Assembly: GCA_965112735.1 (NCBI GenBank)
Contig: OZ218955.1
Location: forward strand, 124,001-188,000
DNA length: 64,000 nt
Reading direction: 5' to 3'
Origin: Phaeosaccion multiseriatum
Lineage: Eukaryota; Protista; Ochrophyta, other classes
Shown: piece after piece, positions 2,895 to 34,438 of the stretch
Layout: every line of letters begins with the position of its first letter
Position numbering within the stretch: the first letter of the stretch is position 1
Made by a program: the position numbers and the translations under genes
Notes under the pieces: model-generated
What the model saw: only the letters and a program-made list of their open reading frames with translations
The model's database searches: none
Told to the model about the DNA's origin: nothing

Positions 2895-4265
2895 GATTGA
2901 GTCATGCACGGGACACGCACACACACGCGCGGCATTTAGTCACGCAGAGGACACACACATACAGACGGGATGGAGTAAGACTCACAGACGGGATGGAGTA
3001 AGACTCACAGACGGGATGGAGTCACGCAAGGTACACTTGCACAAACACCAACGCCACCATTTGAACAAGGCCGTAGCCTGGACGGGAGACACGGCGCTTC
3101 TCGTCCGTTCTCCACCCTTCACCCCTCCACATCCTTCACACCGCGTCCTCTCCGCCCTCCCCCCTCCCACCACTCCCTCCCTCCCTCCTCCTTCCCTACC
3201 TTAGGGTAGCTGTTCTGCTGGCGGTACCAGGAGCCGAGGCCCGTGTTGCTCTCGCTGGACCAGGGGTTGTGCGCTAGGGCCCGCTCGAAGTACTCCATCG
3301 CTGCCATAGGGGCACGGCAGAGGGCGGGGAAAGGGTGTAGGAGAAAGGGTAGGGTAGGGTAGGGTATAGGGCATATGGGTATAGGGCATATGGGTATATG
3401 GGCATGTGGGTATAGGGCATATGGGTATAGGGCATATGGGTATATGGGCATGTGGGTATATGGGCATGTGGGTATAGGGCATATGGGTATAGGGCATATG
3501 GGCATAGGGCATATGGGTACAGGGCATATGGGTATATGGGCATGTGGGTATAGGGCATATGGGTATATGGGTATAGGGCATATGGGTATAGGGCATATGG
3601 GTATAGGGCATATGGGTATATGGGCATGTGGGTATAGGGTATATGGGTATATGGGCATATGGGCATATGGGCATGTGGGTATAGGGCATGAGGGTATAGG
3701 GCATATGGGTATAGGGCATATGGGTATATGGGCATATGGGTATATGGGCATATGGGTATAGGGCATATGGGTGTAGGGCATATGGGTGTAGGGCATATGG
3801 GTATAGGGTATATGGGTATATGGGCATGTGGGTATAGGGCATATGGGTATAGGGCATATGGGTATATGGGCATGTGGGTATAGGGCATACGGGTATAGGG
3901 CATATGGGTAAAGGGCATATGGGTATAGGGCATATCTCTTGCTCCCTTACCCTCCCACCTTTCTCTCTCGTTCTCTCTTACCCCCCCAAACCCCCCCCCA
4001 CACACACCCGCTGACACACAACATCCACCCATTGACTTACTACCCACCTAGGCTGTCGCTGTCCTGCGCCTGTGCGATGCATCCGAGTGAGTGCCACGCC
4101 CTCCCATTGGCCTCCGACAGTTTCGTTAGCACGCCCTCCACGCCCTCCCCGCCCCTCCGACTCTAAGGATTGTTAAAGATGGGGTGGGGAGGGGGTGGAC
4201 GCGGATCGGCGCAGCAAAGACACAGATCGAGAGAGGGACAGAGACAGATAGAGAGAGAGGGAGAT

Positions 4266-4296
<31 letters not shown>

Positions 4297-5515
4297 GGGG
4301 GGGGTGAGAGAGAGCGTGAGGGAGCGAATCTATGGCAGAGAAAGGATGAGAGGGAGAGACAGAGCGCGAGAGGAAGCAGAGAGAGACAGAAAGGAGGAGA
4401 GCTGGACACAAGTCCTCCCTCTCCCAGCCAAGCTCGTCACTGCTTAGCACCGCCGCACAGCGGTGTAAGCACACGCACTCTGCTCTCTCTCTGTCTGTCT
4501 CTCACCTCAGCGCCGGGCTGGGAGCGCCTGCGTAAGGCTCCTCCTCCTCCCTCTCGGCCCGGGAAGCCTCCTGCTTGGTCCGCAATAGACCTGTCTGTGG
4601 GCCTGTCTGCTGACCTGCCCGCGCCTGGAAGGGCAGAGGGGGTGGCCCGCCGCCCCTCGTCTCTAGTTGAACCCTCTTCGGAGCCTCGACGCGGAGCCGG
4701 CCCCCCTTCCTCTGCCCCTCCTCTCCCCCCCGCTGGCCCCGACCCCTTACCTCCGCCGTCTCCCCCCTGCCCGCTGCTGCCAGTTACCGCATCGCCACCG
4801 TTGCCGCCTCTTATCCGGCCTTCTATCCGCCCTTCTCTCCCCCCCGCCCCCCCCATGCCTGAGCCCTCTTCACCACCTCGACTCGGACCCCCTCCTCCCC
4901 CTCCTCCGTTCGCCCCGCTACCGTTGCTGCTGTTGTTACCCACGCCAACTCTCATGCCGAAGCCCCCCGCGCCTGGTGCCGGTGGCTCCGAGGTGGGGTG
5001 TTGAGGAGGATGGGCATGGCGGTGGTGAGGGCTGGGCTGCCCCCCGCCCTGCCCCCCGCCCTGCCCCCCCGCCCCTCCTACGTCAGCGGGAGGGGCTTCG
5101 AGCGGGGGTGGAGGCCCCCCTCCCCCACCCGGTCTTCCTCCCCCCCTTCCCACCCCCACATGGCGTTGCTGACCCTGACCTGGACCCTGACTCCCCGCAC
5201 CACGTCCCCAGTGACCACGCCCGCCACTCCCTCCTGCGCCACCTCCTGCTGCCCCAGGCGGGGGAGGGCCTTGGTACTCCCCGCCTTGGCCCTGGGGGGC
5301 ATAACCCCCACCCACTCCGCCCCCCATCCCGTTCTCCCTCGGCGCTCCGGAACGGAACCCTGTACCTACATGCTGCCCCCCTGCGGCACGAGGCGTGATG
5401 TGAGGGTGGGGACCTGGATGGGGCCCTGGGTGGGGACCTGGATGGGGCCCTGGGTGGGGCGGGCCTCCTCCGCTCCAGGACGCTCCACCTCCACTGTGAT
5501 GCAGGCCCCCCACGT
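31..5515 (-). CDS. Ssn6/Cyc8-like TPR transcriptional corepressor, multi-exon; runs off the left edge, start exon unresolved
   Basis: Spliced TPR exons: AMEYFERALAHNPW (3200-3300), ALELLGRAINLDEGNGQ, AWAEMAFCYLMM..EPHLW, YGLGLLYDRFG, VDPEFELEHEVRFHMAVIAKQQGK, DVWAQIGHVYE..KALQQLGWLHY, GWYLLGRCYM, AYDQAVTCDPDNPNVWCSLGVLYYQ. These match the Ssn6 motif series (WYLLGRCYM; P.FWCSIGVLYYQ). Gly/Pro-rich N-terminal exon at about 4507-5515. Confidence 0.85.
216..634. repeat. 11-bp tandem minisatellite ACAGTCTGT(C/T)/CAGTCTGTCTA, intronic
   Basis: About 38 units of cagtctgtcta/cagtctgtcca/cagtctgccta, seen directly. Confidence 0.95.
3363..3934. repeat. Intronic satellite (GGGTATAGGGCATAT)n with variants, copy 1
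   Basis: Units gggtata and gggcatat/gggcatgt; same family as 36605-37153. Confidence 0.95.
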
Positions 5516-6283
5516 CTGTGTAGGGCAAGGGCAGGGGGCAAGGGGTGGCAGGGGGAAGAAAATAAAGAGGAACAAAAAAAGGGAGGGAGGGAGAGAGCAT
5601 GAGGGAGAGGGGAGAGACGAGGCTTATCGTGGGATGCGGGAGGGCGAAGTGGAGCGACTGCACATGGAGCGCTTTACATGACGCAGAGGGCTCGCCAACT
5701 GCTCAAAGTAACAAGGGCGAATCCTTCTCCTACGCCCCCCCTTCCCCAAACAAGCCACAGGAGCCACGATATACTACCCTCCACTCGAATCTAGACAGCT
5801 TGAGAGACAGTCTGTCTGGCAAGCAGCTGAGCCGCAACAGCATCGCAGCAGCAGCAGGATGCAGTACCATAGCCTTCCCCTTTGCTCAACCCCGAGTTTT
5901 CCACCTACGTGTGTTGGGGGTGTGATCCATCACACAGTGGCCTACTGCCTGCTGCTAGCTACTAGATTGCTGAGGCTTTTACTGTGGAGCAAAGCCCCTG
6001 CCCGCTGCCCGTGCACCTGCTCGTCAACATTTGTTGGGACGTGCCAAGGGACTGACTGACCGCTGAGTTTCAGCTCGTCGGGAGGGATTTTGGGGGCGGA
6101 TTTTAAATTGTTGCAAAGAGTTGCAGACGTCAAAGGACATAAGGCTGGGCTGCAAGGGGAGCAAGAAGAGGAAAGGAAGGGCAAAGACTACGAGATATCA
6201 GCGTCACCTTCTTGGGAGGTTTGCAGGAGAGGCGTCTTCACCGGAAGGCAGGGGGGATTTCATTTCAACAAAGGCAGAGAGAG

Positions 6284-9200
6284 CATGAGGACGAGAGGCA
6301 CGGGCGTCGGACACGGAGACCGAGAGGAGGGAGGCGCGGTGGAGTCCAGTGCAGATGGAGCTACGGGGGGCAGGGGGAAGAGGCGGAGGACTTCTCTGAC
6401 AGAGGTAGGAGGAGGAGGTCCGGGGAGAGGAGGGGAGGAGAGTGAAGATGTGTGCGTTTGCCCTCCCTCTGGGGCGGCTTCAATGCGCCTTGCTATCGGC
6501 CTGTCAAGTCAAACCAACAGCCCCATGCCTTTCAAAATCGTGCACAATTGTGCTTCTCTGGCCCCGTCGTCTGTGATACCCTCTGTTCTCTCCGAACGCT
6601 CCCAGCAGCGGCCAGAGGACGATGACGAAGAGGAGGGGGAGGACCAACAAGAGGGGGAGGGGGAGGAGAGCGAGAGAAGGCACCGACACAGAGACAGCGG
6701 CGCACAGTCCCGCAGGAAGGCAAGGGCCCGCGTCCTTGCGCGGTCTGGAGTGCCGCAAAGCACTTTGGAGACCTCGCCGGGCGGGGGCGGGGGGAGGGCG
6801 CCGGGGAGGGGGAGGAGGGGGAGAGGGGCGAGGAGGGGGAAGCAGCAGGAGGATGAGGATGGTGATGACGAAGACGAGGAGGAAGAGAATGAGGATGAGG
6901 AGACTCCTGCGAGAAGGCGAAGCAAGAGGAGTGGGGCGGGAGTGAATAGGAGGGTCAGGCAAGACGAGGAGGAGGAGGAGGAGGAGGAGGAGGAGGAGGA
7001 GGAGGAGGAGGAGGAGGAGGAGCAGGAGGAGCAGAGCACTACAAGGCCGCGAAGGCGGAGTGGCGGGCGGAAACCCAAGAGAAAGAGTGGAACGGGCAAA
7101 AGGAGAAACAGCAGCAGACATTCCACTGCGAGTGCTGCTGCTCTCGCCGCCGCTGAGGAGGAGGAGGAGGAGGAGGAGGAGGAGGGAGAGGGAGGGAGGA
7201 GGCGGGATCTGAAACTGCGGCGATCGAGCAGGGGGCAGGCGAAAGCTGTGTATGGGGAGTTGGAGGAGGAAGAGGAAGAGGAGAGGGAGGAGGAGGAGGA
7301 GGAGGAGGAGGATGAGGTGGAGGAGGAGGGAGAGCCAGAGGAGGAGGAGGAGGAGGAGGAGGAGGAGGAGGAGGAGGAGGAGGGAGACGACGACGAAGAT
7401 GGCGGAGCCTCCAAGGTAAGCAGATGGATGGCAGTGGATGGTCTTTCCGTTGAGGGCTGTGCCGTGGTGCGTGTGTTTGTTTCCCTCCAGCTCTGATCCA
7501 CCGATCAGTACATTAATATACTGAATTCAAATAATCCCCTCTCCTCACCCCCTCAGCGGTCGGCGCGATCACGAAGGCGGCGCAAGAGGGGCACGAACAC
7601 GGAGCTCCGCAACCTCCTGGGCCTTTCCAGTCAGGAGCAGGCAGCGAAAGACCGACGGAGGCGCACCCTGGGGCAGCTCGAATGGCGCCTCAAGTACAAG
7701 GAGGAGGGAGAGGGGGAGGAGGGGGGGGAGGGAGGAGGGGAGGGCAAGGGGGTGGAGGAGGGGAGGGGGCGCAGCTTGAGGAGCAGGGGAAGCATCAAGG
7801 CGCCGGACGTGCTGAACTACAGCGAAGCCAACAACAACAACGACGAGGAGCAGTACCAGGTGGGTCTCCTTTCTCCTCCCTCCCCTCCCCTCCCCTCTCT
7901 CTCCTCGCGTCTCCTCTCTCCTCTTCCCTCTCTTTTCCTCTCTTCTCTCCGCTGTCCCTGTCCCTGTCTTCTCTCCCTCCACGGGCATCAATGACATCAA
8001 TGACATCAATGACATCAATGACATCAATGATACCAATGACATCAATGGCATCGTGTCACTCACCTCGCCGGCCTTTTCTTCTTCATTTCTTACTATGACT
8101 AACTGACTTACTGCGACTTCCGACTGTGACTTTCTGTGAGTGTTGTCTCGCCGAGAGAGGGAGAGAGCTCATCTGCCCCCCCCTTGCCCCTGTCTCAAGC
8201 AGTACTCCCTTGCCCCTGCCTCAAGCAGTACTCCCTTGCTCCTGCCCCTGTCTCAAGCAGTACTCCCTTGCCCCTGCCCCTGTCTCAAGCAGTACTCCCT
8301 CCGGCGCCGCAAGCGCAGTGAGGGGCGTAACCCCCGCTTCAACATCTCCAGCACGGGGGGCACCACGTATCAGGAGGGGCCATCCCGGGGGGGCGCAGAC
8401 AGCCGCCGCCCCCCGGGGTCCGCCTACGCCGATCTGGAGCGCCGGGCCGCCGCCAACAGCCGCCGGACAACCAACGCGGGAGGGGGAGGGGGGGGCAGCA
8501 GCCACTACTCCAGGAGGGGCGGGGGGGGCAGGGGGGCGAGGCGGCGTAGGCACTATGACTCGAGCAGCGAGAGCAGCGAAGGAGACAGGGGGAGGGCCAT
8601 GGAGTTTGGAGGAGGCATGAGCGGCAGGCAGAGGGACGAAGACGAGGACTTTGCGGGCTATGTGCACAGGAACGCTGCCAAGGAGCTTGCGTCAGTCACG
8701 CCCATCAACGGGATTGACCACGGGAGGGGGGGAGGTGGAGGGGAGGGCGAGGCGGCGGGCGGGGGGGGTAAGAGCAAGACAGGCAGCAGCGGAAGTATCC
8801 GCGACCGGGCCGATCAGCGGGACATTCTGCGGGCAGATGCCAACCCCGTGGATGTGGACTCGAGCATCGGGTGGGAGAGCGTGGGGGGGCTGAGCGGGCA
8901 CGTGAGGCAGCTCAAGGAGATGGTCATGTTGCCCCTCGTGTACCCTGAGGTGTTTAGCAAGTTCAACTCGCAGCCGCCAAGAGGTGCGTGACGAAGAGGG
9001 GGGCTTATGCCACTCAGCTCACCCATTGACTGCCATCCGACCCCCTCACACCAATCCACTGCCTTCTCATCCACTCAGCAATTCATTCACTTGCCGGATC
9101 ACCCACCCATCCACTGCCATCCCCACCCACCCACCCACGCATCCCAGGCATTCTCTTCTCCGGCCCACCCGGGACAGGCAAGACTTTGACGGCGCGTGCC

Positions 9201-9379: not shown

Positions 9380-10914
9380 TGTGTTTGTGTGGCTGTGTGT
9401 GTACCCATCACCCCCTCGCTCAATCGCTCGCTCAGTGCTCTTCACGCACGCTTGCACACACGCACGCACACGAGAACCACCCCTTCTTTCTTTATCCCTC
9501 TTTTCCTTCCTTACTTACTTCCTTACTTACTTACGTACTTACTTACGTACTTACTTACGTGAGCCCTTCCCTTCCCCTCCACCGCCCCCTCAGGCCCGCA
9601 AGTTCGCCCCCTCAATCATCTTCTTCGACGAGATCGACGGCCTCGCCCCCGTGAGGAGCGCCAAGCAGGACCAGATACACGCCAGCATTGTCAGCACGCT
9701 TCTGGCCCTCATGGATGGTCTCGATGACAGGGGACAGGTCGTCGTCATTGGGGCCACCAATCGCCCGGATGCGGTGGACCCGGCCTTGAGGCGGCCGGTG
9801 AGTTGATGGGTCGGTGGGTGGATATGTGTGTGGGTGGGTGGTTGGGTGGGTGGTTGGGTGGGTGGGTGGATGGTGGGTGGGTAAGTGGGTGGGTGGGTGG
9901 GTGGGTGAGTGGGTGAGTGAGTGGGTGGGTGAGTTGGTGGGTGGGTGGGTGGGTGGGTAAGTGAGAGGGTGGGTGGTGGGTTGGATGGTTGGTTGTTTGC
10001 TGTTTTGATTCAGTCCGTCTGTGTATAGATCCGCTCCGTCCAACTGCACTCACTCACTCCAGGTCTAACGCTCTGCTCTGCCCTTATACCTCCAACACTC
10101 ACCCACGCACCCACCCACCCACCCACCCCCACCCATTGCTTGTTCCAGGGCCGCTTCGACCGCGAGCTTGCCTTCAAGCTGCCTGACGTCAAGGCCCGGC
10201 GTCGCATATTAGCCATCCACACTTCCAAATGGCAGCCATCGCCTGCCAAGCCGCTCCTGGGGGAGCTCGCTAAGCGCACGGTGGGGTACTGCGGAGCGGA
10301 CATCAAGGCTCTGTGCGCAGAGGCCACGCTGTGCGCCTTTAGACGCCTCTTCCCGCAGGTAACGGGCGGTGGGGGTGGGGGGTCAGGGTACAGGGCCAGG
10401 TGTGAGAGGCGTGCCAGTGTCAGTTTCAGTGTCAGTTTCAGTGTCAGTTTCAGTGTCAGTTTCAGTGTCTGTCCCGTCCTATGAGGGCCTCGCACGACGG
10501 CAGCCCGCCGCCCCCCCTCAATCCTCTCGTCGTGCCTTCTCTCTTCTTCCCGGACTTGGGCCTCCCCCCCCCCCAACCAGGTGTACACCTCCTCCCGCAA
10601 GCTGCTGCTAGACCACTCCTTGATCCAAGTGTCTCGAGTGGACTTTGCTCAGGCCATGCGTCACATCACTCCTGCCGCACATCGGGCGGTCTTCTCTCCG
10701 GCGGCTGCTCTACCGACGGCACTTGGGCCTCTGTTGGGGCCCAAGCTGCAGGAGGTGCTGGCGGGGGTGGAGGGGCAGATGCCTGCGGCCTTCGCTATGA
10801 GTCATCAGGAAGAGGAAGAGGAAGCGGCCCATGAGAAGGAAGAGGGGCAGGAGGGGGGGCCGTCTACTGTTACTGCTGCTGCTGGATCACCGAGTGGTGC
10901 ATGTGATGACGAAG

Positions 10915-10959
<45 letters not shown>

Positions 10960-12762
10960 GAGGAGGCTTGGGCATGGCGGGCGTGGTGATGATGGAGGTG
11001 GGGCAGGGAGGCGCGGACGGGCGGAGCCAACAGGAGGACAAGGACAAGGACAAGGACAAGGACACGGAGGACGAAGGAGAAGCGGACGACGATGACGACG
11101 AAGACGACGAGGATGGCAGTGGACGGGACGAGGAGGGCTGCTTGGGCTTGGGCTGGGGCATGGACGCGTGGAAGAGGGCAGACGGGGTGCACAGACCAAG
11201 GCTCGTGCTCAGGGGCCGTCCGGGAGGGGGACAAGACGCCCTAGCTGCGGCGGCTCTGCACCGGCTTGAAGGTCTGTGTGTGCGTGTGTGCGTGTGTGTG
11301 TATGTGTGTATGTGTGTGTGTGTATGTGTGTGTGTCCTTCCCTTGTGTGGCAAATCACAAACGGAATCGCAGCGAAACATGAAGCTCATCTCATCCCCCC
11401 ATCTCTCCCTTCTTCCCTCGAACAACCAACAGGCGTACCAGTCTTCTCCCTGGACCTGTCCTCCCTTGTCTCCGACCCCCACTGCGGGCCCGAGGCTGCC
11501 ATCGTCTCGCGCTTCAGCGAGGCGCGTCGCTCTGCCCCGTGCATCCTCTTCCTCCCCGGGGTGGAACGCTGGTGGGGAGACGAAACTGTCCACCACCCCC
11601 TCCTACGCACCTCTCTTGTGAGCCTGCTCAACGGATTGCCCGACACCATGCCCATCCTTGTGATGAGTACGTGGACCTTGGCGGGGGACAGGATGGCAGT
11701 GGATGGGGAGGGGGCGGAGTCGGGGGTGGGAGGAGGAGGAGGAGCTGGTGTCGGGACTTACCGCGAGCCCCCGGGGGACCTGCTGAGCGCGCTGCTGGGG
11801 GGGCTACCTCTCACAGATAGCGACTACGACCCTTGCTCCTGTGATGCTGAGATGGGGGAGGAGGATGACGCGTGGAGGGGGGTGTACACGGTGGGACCGC
11901 CCGACCACAAGGGGCGGAGGAGCTTTGTGAAGGAGATGCTGCAGCACCTCAAGGCCATTGTGGAGGGACGCTTCGGACCGAGTGAGGCGCTGCTGATTCC
12001 AGAGCCCGCGGAGGGGGAGGAGGGGGAGGAGGAGGAGGAGAAGAACCTCTATTGGGGCGATGAGCATGTTCTCGCGAGCTTGGTGAGTCTTGATGAAGAG
12101 GACAAGGGGCCGGGGGAGGGGGAGGAGGAGGGGGAAGAGGGCGACGGGGAAGGCGCAGCAGCAGCATCAACGGGAGGAGGAGGAGGAGGAGGAGGAGGAG
12201 GAGGAGGAGGAGGAGGAGGAGGAGGAGGAGGAGGAGACGCGTCTTCTGTCGAGGGGGGGGCGGCAGCGGTGGCGGCGAAGATGGTGGCCACTTCCGCAGC
12301 CGCCACAGATGGCGACACTGCAGAGGCCGAATTACCAGCGGTTGCAGCTGGAGCTGAGCAAGGGGGCGCTGCTTGTAATGGCTCGCCCTGTGCCCCTGCC
12401 TCTACCGCCTCTGGCCACCGGGATGAAGGAAGCAGCAGCATCAGCAGCAGCAACAGCAGCAGCAGCAGCAGGCAGATTGGCGCCGGCATTGGCAGATTCA
12501 GTAGTGAGGTGGTTGCTTCGCCTCCTCCTTCTTCGCTGCTTGCGATTGCAGAGCTGGCGAAGCAGCAGCTGCGGCAGCTGCAGGAGAGGCGTAAGGCCAA
12601 GGACAAGAGCAGGGGCAGGCATATGGGCAGGGGAGGGGGTGTGTTCTTCCGAGCTGGGACGCGCAAGAGGGCCCTGGAGGTGCTTCCCTTCGCGCCAGAG
12701 GAGGAGGACCCCGTGAACCGCAGAATGGCCGAGGAGGAGCAGTCACAGAAAGAGGTGTGTGT

Positions 12763-27257: not shown

Positions 27258-30200
27258 TCAGCCGCCCACCCCCCCGGAGTCTCCTTCGGCGCCGCTCAAC
27301 ATGCCCACCCTGGAGGGGCTGCCGGACAGCGTGGGGGGTAAAGTTGGGGTCGAGCCGGGCCCAACCTGGCCCACACTGCCCCCTGCTGCGGGTGAAGGAC
27401 CGAACCCCGCGGTTCCGCTGCCGCCGCCGCTGCCGCTGCTGTTGGCTCCTGGGCCTGCTGTGAGGGGGTGCGGTTGGTGCTTCACTGCACCTTCTGTGAT
27501 ACCGTGGAGGGGGGCAGAGGGAGGGGCGGGGCTCGGGCTACCGGGCACGCTCGAGCCGTTATTGTTGTTGTTGTTGGCGACGACCCCCTGTTGTTGGTGG
27601 TGCTGTTGCTGCTGCTGAGGAGGCGGTGCTGTGGCGTGACCCCTGCCCAAGAGGAGGTCTATACACTGCCGAGACACCACCTCGGCATACTCCATCTTCT
27701 CCACCACCTACAGCAAGCAAGTGCAGAGAGCGGAGTGAGTGAGTGAGCAAGTCATTGAATCGACCAACGCCAGCAGCCAAGAGGGGATGGTAGTGGAAGG
27801 TCATTGAATCGGCCAACGCCAGCAGCCAAGAGGGGATGGTGGTGGAAGGTCATTGAATCGACCAACGCTCTCGAAAGGCTCGTCGGTGTGGAGTCACCAA
27901 AGTAGCGCTACCACTCATTTTCAAAGTAGCGCTACCAAACAAAAGCGTCTCAACCTTCAACTGGGGCGCCTCTCGCTCTTCCCCGAGGACACCCATCCCC
28001 TTCCCTCACCACAGATTGCCATCCCCTTCCCTCACCATAGACTGCCATCCCCTTCCCTCACCACAGATTGCCATCCCCTTCCCTCACCACAGACTGCCAT
28101 CCCCTTCCCTCACTACAGACTGCCATCCCCTTCCCTCACCACAGACTGCCATCCCCTTCCCTCACCACAGACTGCCATCCCCTTTCCTCACCTCGTCGGC
28201 GAGGTCATCGCTGACCCCAAGGTTCTGTTCGTCGAGCAACAGGCGCCGAGTGTCCGCAAACATGCCGAAGCAGCGGCTGAGGCGCGCCACGGCCTGCTGC
28301 ACGGGTGGCAGTGCCAGCACCGGCAACATGCCCCCCTCCCCAACGACGCCTCCATCACCCTCTCCTTGGCGCACATGGCCTGCATGCTGCTGCAATTGCC
28401 TGGCTCTCTGGCTGTGAATGGCCTTTCTGTGCGCCTCCGTGACGGGAAGGCGAGACAGGCCCCACACACGGGACGGACGCGTGGGCAGCACTTGTTCCAG
28501 CCGATGCCGGTCCAAGGAACATGCTTCATCCCCGGGGGCGGGGGCGGTAACATTCCCTGGGGTCCCTTCCCCGGGGTTGGGGCGTTTGCCGCCCGCCTTC
28601 GGAGTGGCCAGCAGACGCATCACCGCACTGCAGCGCGGCTTGAAGCTCCTTCTGTGCCCCCCTGCCCCTCCTGTGCCCCCCTCCGCGGATGCTCCCCCAT
28701 GGCGCACAGGTCCGTGACTTTGACTATAGCGCACAGGTCCGTGACTTTGACTGTGCTCCGGCGGCGGCCTGTGCCCGTCATGCCCTGCGCCCTTCGCCCA
28801 CAGGGAGGCCCCCGTGCCCCCCGGGGTCTTTTTGTGTGTGTTGTGCGCCCCCCCCTGAGGGCCGTACATGGACTGTTTCCTCAGGACAGGGCGGCGACTT
28901 GTGTCCCCTCCTCCTCCTCCTCCTCCTCCTCCTCCTCCTCCTCCTCCTCCCTGCCTCCGACCGTCGTACCCCCACAAGCCGCTGCTGCTGCTTCGGTTCG
29001 TCAATGTGCCCCCCCCCGCCTTGCCATTGCCGCCTTCCGTCGACGTGTAGGGCTGCGGCTTCCTCCTCCCCGCGCCTCCAATGCCCATATCGCTAGCTCC
29101 CCTGCCCCTGCCTGGCGCAAAGGGATCTCGCCCCAAGTGTCTCCCCTTGGAATGGCCGCCCCCGTCATCGCCCCCGTCATCGCCCCCGTCATCGCCTTTC
29201 CCTGCCACGGGCGATGAAGCCTGCTGCTGCTGCTGACTCGGTGGGTCTGCTCTGACGGCTCCGGTCATGCCCCTCTGGAGCACCCTCGGTTTGAGTTTGG
29301 CCTTGCGTTGGTAAGCACTCTCCTCGGCTTGATGCTCGAGGGTGATGCGTGGCTTCGCTTCGTGGCGCAGTTTCTTTGGGGGGGTGGAGGGAGGGGAAGA
29401 GGGTCGCTGGGGGGGTGAGGAGTCTCGCGTGTAGACGACGCATATACGCATACGCACACGCGCGCACACACACATTCACACACACGCACACACACGCATA
29501 TACACACACAAACGCACCCTTACGGCGTCGATGTTGCTTGTCTGTGAGGTGAGCACTCCCCTCCTGGCGGCGTCTCTCCTCCTGAAGGACCACCATGTCT
29601 TGGGGAGGGCGAAGATGTCGAGCCCAGGGTCCACGCCCACCTACACAAGGAAAGGCGTGGCCGCGGATGGCGATGGATGGCAATGGATGGCAATGGATGG
29701 CAGCGGATGGCAGTGGGTGGCGTTGGAGGGGTAAGGTGATGCTTCGGCACGTGAAGAGGAGAACATTCGACATAGGGCCCCCCTCGTCACTGACTTACTG
29801 ACCTGCTCCATAGTAGTGTTGTCCAGCGGCAGCTCCACCCCCCTGTATATGAACACGGTGCTGCTGAAGCGCAGGTGCAAGCGCAAACTCACGCGCTCCA
29901 GCACGGGGCCGAGCGGCGCCTGAGCAGGGCAGTAAGTCAGTGGGGTCAGCAAGTCAGTGGGGGAGGGGTGATGTGGTGAATGCTAATTCGTGTATAAATC
30001 CCATTCGATTGTTAGAGCGGCCTCTGACACCTGACACCTAGTACCTCTGACACCTGACACCTGACACCTGACACATCGTAGCGCTAGAGTAGCGAGTGAA
30101 GTCATGGGTGTCAGGCGCCTCCGGTGGTGTCCATCAGTCAATCCGTCAATCAGTCAGTCAGTCAATCAATCAATCAGTCAGTCAGTCAATCAGTCAGTCA

Positions 30201-33200
30201 ATCAATCAGTCAATCAGTCAGTCAATCAGTCAGTCAATCAATCAGTCAATCAGTCAATCAGTCAACCAGTCAATCAATCAATCAATCAGTCAATCAATCA
30301 ATCAGTCAATCAGTCAAGCTCTCATCCCCTCGCTCGTCCACCCTCCACCGACCTTGAGCGGAATGACGAAGAGTTTGGCTGCCAGTGTGGTGGCTCCGTC
30401 CTGATTCCTCACGTAGATCTCCGCCGTGGGGCCGTGGTCCCCGGGGGGCAGCACCGCACGGGGGTTGACTCCTCCATTGCCCATCACCTCTCCGGTGTCG
30501 AGGATGTTGTCGGAGAAGTCCAGCACAGCTGCGGCAGTTGGTGATACGGCAGCAGAGCAGAGGTATATGGGCACAGAGGAGGAGAGAAGAGAAGAGAAGA
30601 GGAGAGAGGGAGAGCCGGGCAGAGGTGTCAGGTTCGAATAAGGTTCGCTACCAGGGGGATATCTTGGAAGATGTTGCGTACCTTCCTTCCTTCCTTCCTC
30701 CCTCCCTCCCTCCCTCCCTCCCTCCCTCCCTCCCTCCCTCCCTCCCTCCCTCCCTCCCTCCCTCCCTCCCTCCCTCCCTCCCTCCCTCCCTCCCTCCCTC
30801 CCTCCCTCCCTCCCTCCCTCCCTCCCTCCCTCCCTCCCTCCCTCCCTCCCTCCCTCCCTCCCTCCCTCCCTCCCTCCCTCCCTCCCTCCCTCCCTCCCTC
30901 CCTCCCTCCCTCCCTCCCTCCCTCCCTCCCTCCCTCCCTCCCTCCCTCCCTCCCTCCCTCCCTTCCTTCCTCCCTCCCTCCCTCCCTCCCTCCCTCTCTC
31001 CCTCTCTCCCTCCCTTCCCTGCTTGCTTACCATCGGCCAGATCTGGGGGCAGATACTCGTCGAGCTCATCCCGGACGTCTTCCGCGGTCGCCCGAGTGGG
31101 CCCACTGGGGGCGGCGGCAGGCGCCCCCCCCTCGGGCTGCTCCGGCTGCTGCTGGGCGGTGGCGGTGGCGGCTGCTGTTCGCTGGGCAGGACCGAGTCTG
31201 GCATCCAATCGCAGACAGATCTGCAGCACCCAGGGGTGGGGAGCGGGTGAAGGGAGTCAGGCACACAACACAACCACAACCGAGTGCCCTCTTGCTGCCA
31301 TCTGTTGCCATCTGTTGCGATCTCAGGCCATCTGAACTCAGGAGTGAAATGCTCACTATTTGACCCGCCTTCTCCTCCTCCATGCGCAGCTTCCGTCCCC
31401 TCCCTTGCTTGCTTCCCCCCTCCCCTTCTCCCTCCCTCCCTCCTCCTCTCCCCCTCCCTCCCTCCCTCCCTCCGTCCGTCCGTCTCTCGCTCCCTCCCTT
31501 CCTACCTGCTTAAGCAGAGACCTGGACAGCGCCTCGAGAAAGGCCGGCGCCTCATGAGAGAGAATGAACACGGGGTGTAGCGCCGATGCCAAGCGGCTCA
31601 GCTGAGCGATGGTCGTCACGCGGCCGAGTTGCTGTATCACCAACTGTTGCTGCTGCTGCTGCTGTGGGTGCGAGTGCGGGTGGGGGCTGTTGTGGTGCTG
31701 CTGCGGGCTGTTCTCCAGCACGCCCCCCCGGGAGAAGAGCCCCGCCAAATACTCCGTGAGGCGATGATAGGCATCGTACTGTGCCAGCTCCGCCTGGAAA
31801 GGAGGGGCAGTTACAGTTTCAGTTTCAGTTGAAGGGGTATTGTTAGTTTGCCGCCTTCGAAGAGACACCAAATAGGAGGACAGGCAGCGCCGCTCCACCA
31901 CTCGCGCATGGAGGGGCCACAAGCGGGAGGCATATGGGCCGCCATCGGTAGGCATACGGCCACAAACGGTAGGCACATGGGCCCCTCCAAGTGGGGACTC
32001 CTTCGTGTACGATTAGTGCTGGATGCTAATCACCAACTGCCTGTACGACTGCTCTGTGATCCTGCATCACCAACTGCTTGTACAAATGCTGCTGTGAGCC
32101 TGTATCACCAACTGCTTGTACAAATGCTGCTGTGATACTGTATCACCAACTGCCCGCTTACCTTGTTGTGAATGGGCAGGGCCATTCCCTTGAAGGTGGC
32201 CTCGTCTTGACGACTGAGGAAGTACGACAGCGTCACCTGAGGAGAGAGAGGAGCGAGAGGAAGAGAGAGGGAAGAGAAAGGAGAGAGAGGAGAGAGAGGA
32301 GAGAGGGAAGAGAGAGAGAGGACAGAGGGGAGAGAGGGGAGAGGAGGGAAGACAGCGGGAAGAGAGGACAGAGAGAGGGCAATGAGAGGTAAGAGAGGGA
32401 AGAGAGAGAGAAGAGAGAGAGCAGAGAGGGACGAGAGAGGGACGAGGGAGAGTAGAGGAAGACAGAGTGGGCAGAGAGAGCACAGAGGGGAGCCACGCAC
32501 GCACCCACGCCATTGCTTACGGACCTGCATGTCGAAGCTGGTGTTGAACACATGCCACAAGTGGGCATTGGTGCGGATGGCGTACTGCATATACTTGGGC
32601 CCCACCTTCTCCTCGGGCTTCTTCACCTTCCAACGCTGGGTATCGCAGGCGCTGTCTATCCCCTTGGCGACTACCTCCCTCAGCACGTATTCGAGTGCCG
32701 ATGCCAGCACCACCGCGCCCTCCTCGCCGACCATCACGCCCATTTCCTCGTGAGTGATCACACGGACCTCTTCTGCCGACAGGTGCAGACGCTCACGCGC
32801 CCACGCCAAGCAGCCTGGAGAGGCCAAGGGTCGAGGGGCGTCCTCCCCTCCCCCCGCCCCTCCCTGCTGCTGCATCATCAATTGGTGCTGCTCCTGCTGC
32901 TGCGTCAGCTCGGGCGGCTGCCTGGGCTGCATGTAGGCCCCGTCCTGCATGATGTTGGCCAAGCTCGAGTTTTGCATCAACACTAGAGCATGGGCCTTGT
33001 GACCTTCCCTACTTGCCTTGCTGCCCTTCTCGCCACCATCTCTACCGCCGCTTCCCTTGCGCTCCCGCTGCCCCCCGTCCGCGTGTTGCCGTACCACCGA
33101 TTGCTGCGCGTGCCGCTGCTCCGGCTCTGACTCTTCTCTATTCTGCTTCAAGATTTGATCCAAGTTCAGCCTCACTCCGTCCCCCCCATTTCCCCCTTCC

Positions 33201-34438
33201 TCGTCCCCCGGCTGCCGCGTCTGCGCGTGTGGCAGCAGTTGGTGCTGTTGGTGCTGTTGGTGCTGTTGGTGCTGTTGGTGCTGTTGGTGCTGTTGGTGCT
33301 GATGCTCCTGGTGCAGCTGGTGTTGTCGTTGTTGTGGCTGGTGCTGGTGCTGTGGCTGTGGTTGTGGTTGTGGTTGTGGCTGCAGTTGGTATTGTTGAGC
33401 CTGCTGGTACTGTGGATGTTGTTGTTGGTGCTGTTGATGATGCTCTAAGGGGGGGGGGTGCTGATTATGCGGACTATTCTGGTGCTGCTGGTGCTGCTGT
33501 TGTTGTTGTTGTTGTGGTTGTTGTTGATATTGTGGCTGTTGCTGCGGCTCCTGCTGCTGCTGTATCACCAACTGCTGCTCCTGCTGCTGCTGCTGCGGGT
33601 CGTGTGGCCCTTGCCCGGGGCCATGCGCCTGGGTAGTGCTACCCTCCCCCCCGTTGTCTTGCCGTAGCCCCAACAGCTGGCTGCTGCGGTGCCCACTCAC
33701 CTGCTCCGGCGGCAGCAGCAGCTGCTGCTGCTGCTGATAGTCGGAGCCGAGCCCGAGAGGGTGCAGAGGCTCCTCTCGCACCTCCTGAGACCGAAGACTG
33801 GACAACGTCCCGAAGGGGCCCGGTGATGCCCCCCCGCGGGGAGAGGAGGAGGAGGTGGAGGCGGAGGAGACTGAGCGGCTGGATAGAGCGCCTGGTGGCT
33901 GCCCTGCTCTGTGCCTTGCCCCATCCTCTTCTTCCTCGCGGTGGGTCGGTGGACTCTCATCGTGGATCACCTCTGAAGCGGTCGTGCTCTCCTTTCGCGG
34001 ATCATGATGCCGTGGGTGCTGCTGCTGCTGTGCGTGCCCAACCCTCTTCAGAAAGTCGTCCTCTTCAATGTTGCCTTGCAAAGGTGGGGAGGGGTGATGG
34101 TGATGGTGGTCGTGCTCGTGGTCTGAGTCATCCGAGTAGTGCTCGTGCTCGTGGTTGCCATCATCGTCATCATCATCATCATCATCGTCATCACCATCAT
34201 CGTGATGTGTATGGCCATGCTCCTCCTCCTGCTGCTCCTGGTACTGGTGCCTTGCGCCATGCTGCTCGGCAAAGCCAGGGTCGGCATGATCTTCCCCGCG
34301 CGGGGTCTCCGTCAAGCCAAAGAACCTCTGTCCGCCTTCATCTCCCAGCAGGGCCTGAGGCAGAGAGAGTGGAGGGCCAGCAGCAGGCCCAGCTTGCTGT
34401 TGGTGCTGGCGCTGCTGTTGGTGCTGCTGCCCCTGCAT
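27258..34438 (-). CDS. Q/H-rich protein with H2A-like and H2B-like histone folds and a SUMO/ubiquitin-like domain, 9 predicted exons
   Basis: Approximate exons 34438-32525, 32237-32162, 31793-31507, 31220-31031, 30528-30353, 29919-29804, 29641-29518, 29406-28192 and 27707-27258 join in frame. Motifs: VGEEGAVVLASALEYVLREV..VGPKYMQYAIRTN; ASALHPVFILSHEAPAFLEALSRSLLKQIC..TAEDVRDELDEYLPPDLA; IYVRNQDG..APLGPVLERV..FIYRGVELP..TMEQVGVDPGLDIFA. Confidence 0.75.
27993..28190. repeat. 26-bp intronic tandem repeat (catccccttccctcaccacagactgc)
   Basis: About 7.5 copies abutting the donor site at 28191. Confidence 0.9.
30698..31017. repeat. (CCCT)n microsatellite, intronic
   Basis: About 75-80 units. 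Confidence 0.95.

Follow-up and report, generated by a model that had tools for sequence, protein, structure and literature searches.

A predicted single-chain protein with H2A-like and H2B-like histone folds and a putative SUMO-like domain in the ochrophyte Phaeosaccion multiseriatum

The minus strand of a 64,000-nucleotide (nt) stretch of Phaeosaccion multiseriatum DNA (assembly GCA_965112735.1, contig OZ218955.1, positions 124,001 to 188,000; referred to as the window, in whose numbering positions are given) carries a predicted nine-exon gene that runs from 34438 to 27258. A sequence-only reading of this locus had proposed that the exons jointly encode a covalently linked H2A/H2B chain with a built-in SUMO-like domain. 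When spliced, the nine segments amount to 4542 nt with a sole, terminal stop codon and yield a product of 1513 amino acids (aa), while the introns are all of the GT..AG type (8/8) and the reading frame is kept throughout. The proposed exon chain could thereby be reproduced, and every peptide quoted for it was found in the product, in blocks at aa 551-635 (H2A-like), 722-832 (H2B-like) and 857-933 (SUMO-like). The gene is probably a member of a small ochrophyte family of non-nucleosomal double-histone-fold (DHF) proteins, in which an H2A-like fold is followed by an H2B-like fold, a SUMO-like domain and a Trp-rich basic segment, and the long Q/H-rich and G/P-rich flanks would be expansions specific to this organism. 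The following features were delineated along the gene:

34438-32525, 32236-32162, 31793-31506, 31220-31031, 30528-30353, 29919-29803, 29640-29524, 29406-28192, 27707-27258 (-): the nine exons, as obtained by splicing
32789..34438 (-): N-terminal part of exon 1, Q/H/D-rich and of low complexity, aa 1-550; the reading frame is open over 638 codons, and a stop lies 8 codons before the ATG
32534..32788 (-): H2A-like histone fold, alpha1 to alphaC, aa 551-635, at the end of exon 1 (PDB profile search and hhalign)
31620..32533 (-): inter-fold linker, aa 636-721, from the end of exon 1 through exon 2 (32162-32236) into the beginning of exon 3, interrupted by introns 1 and 2; 48 conserved aa precede a species-specific Q-rich insert
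30500..31619 (-): very likely H2B-like histone fold, aa 722-832, interrupted by introns 3 and 4; alpha1-alpha2 fall in exon 3/4 and alpha3-alphaC in exon 4/5, and loop L2 carries a 31-aa A/Q-rich insert (hhalign)
29602..30427 (-): borderline SUMO-like beta-grasp, aa 857-933, spread over exons 5-7 and interrupted by introns 5 and 6 (PDB profile search)
29557..29601 (-): Trp-rich basic segment K-x-W-W..R-R-D after the last strand, aligned in all three species compared
27258..29406 (-): exons 8 and 9, aa 960-1513, in frame with GT-AG introns; a possible G/P/S/R-rich tail with one non-repetitive stretch at aa 1319-1387

An exhaustive phmmer search with aa 540-637 as query against 1.84 billion representative proteins yielded two true relatives, i.e., P0002 and P0004, and two further candidates (P0001 and P0003) were discarded as repetitive false matches. 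P0002 is a 446-aa protein from a JGI metagenome contig (L001), where it is encoded by an uninterrupted open reading frame (ORF) at 4247-5587, and an identical protein (P0006) came from a second sample. P0004 is a partial protein of 178 aa from Ectocarpus sp. 12 AP-2014 (contig L002), the remainder of whose gene was located beyond the deposited gene call and contains a second helical domain and then a beta-grasp, in the same order as in the window. The deposited relatives carry the labels 'hypothetical' or 'unnamed' only. The core of the spliced window product (aa 540-970) aligned colinearly with P0002 over 415 columns (pairwise E 8e-30), crossing all junctions from exon 1 to exon 7. Moreover, a phase-0 intron situated directly after the H2A-like alphaC, between F-x-[MF]-Q and V, is common to the window gene (32525/32236 junction) and Ectocarpus (L002 about 4950/5141), the remaining intron positions differing between these two genes. 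Since the core is colinear with the intron-free P0002 across every junction, and since the same modules occur in Ectocarpus, exons 1-7 are, on this comparative evidence, one conserved coding unit and the single chain is real. This comparison stands in for RNA as support of the exon chain: four public sequencing runs (from one study) contained the locus, with 0.90-0.96 of the sampled words present, introns included, and are probably DNA rather than transcripts because the intron words were also present.

Further homologue searching brought up one sub-threshold 69-aa match as the sole new protein, and a degenerate DNA pattern of the conserved I-R-T..W..N..F motif gave eight metagenome matches, all of them chance by tblastn, and none in the viral collection, from which no copy of the algal family was retrieved. 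As judged from these sequences, the family has so far been found in three ochrophyte genomes (Phaeosaccion, Ectocarpus and one uncultured relative).

To classify the modules, profiles and alignments of three species (window, P0002 and Ectocarpus) were used. MAFFT misplaced short exon pieces, and curated three-species alignments were made instead; H2A, H2B, H3 and H4 alignments, taken from contigs of giant viruses and others that were retrieved with degenerate DNA patterns, served as hhalign references. Searched against the PDB as a single sequence, the first module gave 55 weak matches, 54 of which were H2A, H2A-containing doublets or SOS. The corresponding profile (A2) gave 205 matches at E<=10, of which the best 60 were all H2A, H2A.Z or H2A-containing fusions (E 1.4e-5 to 1e-3), and its alignment to PDB H2A spanned alpha1 through the H2A-specific alphaC. 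By hhalign, this module scored 48.5 against H2A (P 3.8e-8), compared to a background of 12-14 against H2B, H3 and H4, and its original designation as H2A-like was borne out by both searches. The linker that follows it is 55-86 residues long across the family and partly conserved, with the block Q-V-x-L..L-D-x-A-T-E..L-G-L-P-[IV]-H kept in all three species. The conserved linker was also considered as an H2A docking domain, which was rejected as it aligned in zero-confidence columns only.

For the second module, a hand-anchored three-species alignment scored 31.8 against H2B in hhalign (P 1.9e-5) over 73 columns running from alpha1 to alphaC, and alignments from three automatic MAFFT modes scored 20.2-24.5 (P 5.5e-4 to 5.7e-3; 67-69 columns). 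Scores against H2A, H3 and H4 stayed at 9-14 (i.e., background), and pairs of different real core-histone classes scored 7-22 by the same procedure. The observed H2B score was attained by none of 200 column shuffles (mean 9.0, maximum 16.7), and both halves of the domain fitted their cognate H2B half in register (P 0.014 and 1.3e-4). In Atlas, the protein-language-model features of the corresponding region of P0002 (residues 143-232) had named neighbours that were all of histone-fold type, i.e., SOS-like (the nearest), NFYB/HMF, Histone and CENP-S, with scores of 0.80-0.85 that constitute a lead and not a proof. The second module is thus very likely of the H2B type, for which the match proved specific in the four-way test, in line with the earlier reading. 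Two histone folds in one polypeptide, by which a DHF protein is recognized, were accordingly found through the profile matches and the intron-free homologue.

The third module was matched first to SUMO chains when its profile (A6) was searched against the PDB (E 1e-3 to 3e-3), and the 59 matches consisted almost entirely of SUMO, other ubiquitin-like proteins and SUMO-fusion constructs. In Pfam, the ubiquitin family matched with an E of 0.03, below cut-off, and the Rad60-SLD cut-off was not reached either, while the named Atlas neighbours (0.81-0.84, a lead only) all belonged to the ubiquitin/Rad60-SLD clan. The SUMO-like assignment is therefore borderline. In all three species, no GG follows the last strand, and the K-x-W-W..R-R-D segment and a long tail stand in its place, so that the domain is integral to the chain and cannot act as a conjugatable modifier. 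Both parts of the initial description of this module, i.e., SUMO-likeness and the missing di-glycine, were recovered, the former at that borderline strength. The beta-grasp is tethered about 8 residues (P0002) or about 25 residues (window) after the H2B-like alphaC.

The charge of both folds was compared with that of the reference viral H2A and H2B folds, which all had an isoelectric point (pI) of 8.9-10.9 except for one truncated fold. Across the three species, the H2A-like fold had a pI of 5.4-5.8 and a net charge of -2 to -5, and the H2B-like fold a pI of 4.2-6.7 and a net charge of 0 to -9. Moreover, P0002 and P0004 start at the H2A-like alpha1 without an N-terminal tail. The basic charge and basic tails that typify nucleosomal histones are hence absent from both folds and from the tail-less homologues. 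Because the folds are acidic and the homologues have no basic tails, a nucleosome role with DNA wrapping seems unlikely. This bears on the earlier proposal as a whole: the single chain, its modules and their order stood, whereas the suggestion of a non-canonical nucleosome component was weakened by the acidic folds (pI 4.2-6.7 vs. 8.9-10.9).

Outside the conserved core, the gene model is less certain at either end. In the first 550 residues Q, H, G, P, E and D prevail, and the G+C content at third codon positions is 0.53-0.80 in the N-terminal part of exon 1 vs. 0.80 in the core. Because neither P0002 nor P0004 extends N-terminally beyond the H2A-like fold, the real start could be a downstream Met within aa 487-522, and the 540-aa Q/H-rich N-terminus is a candidate part of the protein only, without comparative support. 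In the last 554 residues G, P, S, A and R prevail, and other reading frames are likewise open across exons 8-9. The similarity of this tail to P0002 was not significant (tblastn E 0.1; Smith-Waterman score equalled by 50 of 1000 shuffles), and it is uncertain whether exons 8-9 are part of the gene.

Several introns were found to contain repeats, i.e., a CT-rich tract in intron 1 (32240-32500), a GGGAGG-rich repeat in intron 3 (31412-31465), a GGGA-type run of ~270 nt in intron 4 (30697-30963), a TGATTGAC-type run in intron 5 (about 30150-30335), and a minisatellite with a unit of ~27 nt in intron 8 (about 27990-28190). Furthermore, the 13-mer CAGTTGGTGATAC occurs in five copies in the gene, located on the gene strand at 33562-33574, 31634-31646, 32102-32114 and 32140-32152, and on the opposite strand at 30535-30547. 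Two copies lie in coding exons, in frame and reading Q-L-V-I-Q, one of which sits within the species-specific Q-rich insert between both histone folds; two others lie in intron 2, and one is located 7 nt upstream of the exon-5 acceptor. On the metagenome contig L001, the gene for P0002 is followed immediately downstream by one (6121-6513) that encodes a 130-aa Rad60-SLD_2 protein, and a zf-UBP protein is encoded 4.5 kb further along (10147-11766); this vicinity may be a coincidence of a compact eukaryotic genome.

With regard to function, the most likely arrangement would be one in which both folds clasp one another intramolecularly, as in the SOS histone domain, because histone folds are obligate dimers. 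The clasped pair could then form a stable, H2A-H2B-shaped platform which, being acidic and devoid of basic tails, would bind proteins rather than wrap DNA. The SUMO-like domain after the H2B-like alphaC might recruit partners with a SUMO-interacting motif, or a SUMO/ubiquitin-pathway enzyme, in a non-covalent manner like Rad60/Esc2-type SUMO-like domains. From its sequence, the protein is thus probably a protein-binding scaffold and not a DNA-packaging factor.

A number of points weigh against this explanation. Its functional part is pure inference, the exon chain rests on a comparison of sequences, and the SUMO match is, as mentioned, borderline. In Pfam scans that covered all exons as well as P0002, P0004 and parts of them, no family passed its cut-off for any of the three modules; the Histone family (PF00125) had no match in these sequences, the sole match being to the TAF family PF02969 (E 0.21). 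The best P value of the second module depends on the hand-anchoring of alpha3-alphaC at a shared Pro-x-x-[LM]-Ala motif, and single sequences of this module matched H2B with an hhalign P of 0.005-0.24, making for a moderate H2B match that rests on three sequences. AlphaFold2, run with three sequences only, reached a mean predicted local distance difference test (pLDDT) score of 42.9 for full P0002 and 46.4 for its residues 1-232. When these low-confidence models were searched with Foldseek against the PDB and with VIA-align, only noise was obtained, and an Atlas search with residues 1-325 gave no usable match. In favour of the explanation, the low-confidence helices at P0002 residues 150-164, 168-192 and 199-222 have histone-fold lengths, and the helix lengths in both runs fit a helix-loop-long helix-loop-helix arrangement twice.

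The weak single-sequence H2B signal, together with a second fold that received no confident predicted structure and a phmmer search of P0002 residues 143-232 against the PDB that returned no histone, would also fit a protein whose sole histone fold is the first module, the second helical region being an unrelated domain. The H2A-like fold would then have its pairing partner in trans, either free H2B or a second copy of itself, like a macroH2A-type variant with a long appendage. This appears unlikely, however, as the H2B profile match is colinear over the entire fold, has cognate halves, is four-way specific and lies above all shuffles, and as the language-model neighbours of this region were all histone-fold clusters. 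Even less probable is an artefact of the gene model, in which two or more genes or a decayed pseudogene would have been stitched together: although the exon chain has comparative rather than RNA support, the region is repeat-rich with open frames on both strands, and neither the N-terminal 540 aa nor exons 8-9 are backed by the comparison, such an artefact is extremely hard to reconcile with exons 1-7 matching one uninterrupted ORF elsewhere over every junction (E 8e-30), with introns that are all GT-AG and in frame, and with an intron position shared with Ectocarpus.

A true chromatin histone, i.e., a single-chain H2A-H2B variant that replaces the dimer in special nucleosomes and displays its SUMO-like domain on the nucleosome face, could explain why both folds are related to H2A and H2B in a class-specific way, down to the alphaC helix of each, and would have a parallel in viral single-chain doublets, which are reported to build nucleosomes (PMC8357426). 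Nevertheless, it seems very unlikely given the net charges and pI values (all but one truncated viral fold being basic), homologues that begin at alpha1 without basic tails, an identity to histones of just about 11-25%, and long insertions in the L2 loops. Finally, ubiquitin on H2B sits at K120/K123, and because the beta-grasp is tethered 8-25 residues past alphaC and thereby close to this site, the protein might be a hard-wired look-alike of the ubiquitin- or SUMO-modified H2A-H2B dimer, acting as a soluble decoy or adaptor for readers, chaperones or deubiquitinases of modified H2A-H2B. We regard such mimicry as rather improbable, and retain the non-nucleosomal DHF scaffold as the probable explanation. 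The family would constitute an independent H2A/H2B-fold fusion in the brown-algal lineage, coupled to a SUMO-like module and in an order opposite to that of SOS and the viral doublets. It would also provide a natural test case for the reuse of the H2A-H2B shape outside chromatin, and may show how a ubiquitin-family domain beside the H2B alphaC is read.

Eukaryotic histone repeats have been described as rare (PMC11222145). A 2026 review of DHF proteins covers archaeal doublets, SOS, ABTB2-type proteins, SPT3, bacterial DHF proteins and animal 'HSIH-DHF' proteins, and mentions no alga, stramenopile, ubiquitin or SUMO (PMC13088155). Full-text literature searches for architectures combining a histone fold with a ubiquitin-like domain found nothing relevant, and such a protein is likewise absent from a paper on algal H2A variants. 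The present proteins would therefore make up a new DHF family whose domain partner is likewise new, in an architecture not described in the literature searched. The order of the folds had been put forward as opposite to that of SOS and the viral H2B-H2A doublets, which is correct, but it is not unprecedented since some animal HSIH-DHF proteins also run H2A then H2B (PMC13088155).

Among the known systems, the SOS histone domain (PDB 1Q9C) is an intramolecular pseudo-dimer for protein and membrane contacts (PMC13088155), and resembles the algal family in that a single chain, belonging to a non-chromatin protein, contains two H2A/H2B-type folds of low identity. Moreover, 1Q9C was among the weak matches of the H2A-like fold (E 1.5, single-sequence search), and an 'SOS-like' cluster lay closest to the second fold in Atlas. 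In SOS, however, an H2B-like fold precedes the H2A-like one, both are fused to DH-PH-REM-Cdc25, and the protein occurs in animals and Capsaspora, whereas the algal family has the reversed order and a SUMO-like partner, and occurs in stramenopile algae. Its H2A-like fold is also nearer to true H2A (E 1.4e-5, profile search) than to SOS (E 1.5, 1Q9C, single-sequence search). HSIH-DHF and ABTB2/Cca3 are likewise eukaryotic single-chain H2A/H2B-type pseudo-dimers, the handshake in the algal family being only inferred. HSIH-DHF proteins have >=60% identity to nucleosomal histones and a single domain, ABTB2 adds ankyrin and BTB domains, and both are limited to animals in PMC13088155; the algal proteins, in contrast, share about 11-25% identity with histones, are acidic and carry a SUMO-like domain. 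They fall outside the definition of SOS and ABTB2 both by their order (H2A-like then H2B-like) and by having no guanine nucleotide exchange factor or ankyrin-BTB modules, with Pfam revealing no DH, PH, RasGEF, ankyrin or BTB domain in the window exons, P0002 or P0004.

The doublets of giant viruses (Marseilleviridae; L011, L016, L018 and L020, used here as hhalign references) also join H2A- and H2B-type folds in one polypeptide, but run H2B then H2A, are mostly basic (pI 8.9-10.9) and form nucleosome-like particles. Among these contigs, L011 has an ORF (1-717) with at least three folds (an unknown fold, H2B and H2A), the H2A part of which is acidic, and L020 a H2B-H2A doublet with a tail of ~100 aa (325-1107). 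L016, a giant-virus metagenome-assembled genome contig, has an ORF (5246-5791, +) that reaches the contig end and in which a complete ubiquitin, with R-G-G as its last residues, continues in frame into an H4-like histone; this natural ubiquitin-histone fusion adjoins a H2B-H2A doublet gene at 4510-5232 (-). Lastly, Rad60, Esc2 and NIP45 have an integral SUMO-type beta-grasp that has no C-terminal di-glycine and can act in a non-covalent manner only, a feature that the algal family would share. The Rad60 family differs in having two tandem C-terminal SUMO-like domains and no histone fold, whereas the algal family would have a single such domain, placed behind its two histone folds and followed by the W-W basic segment.

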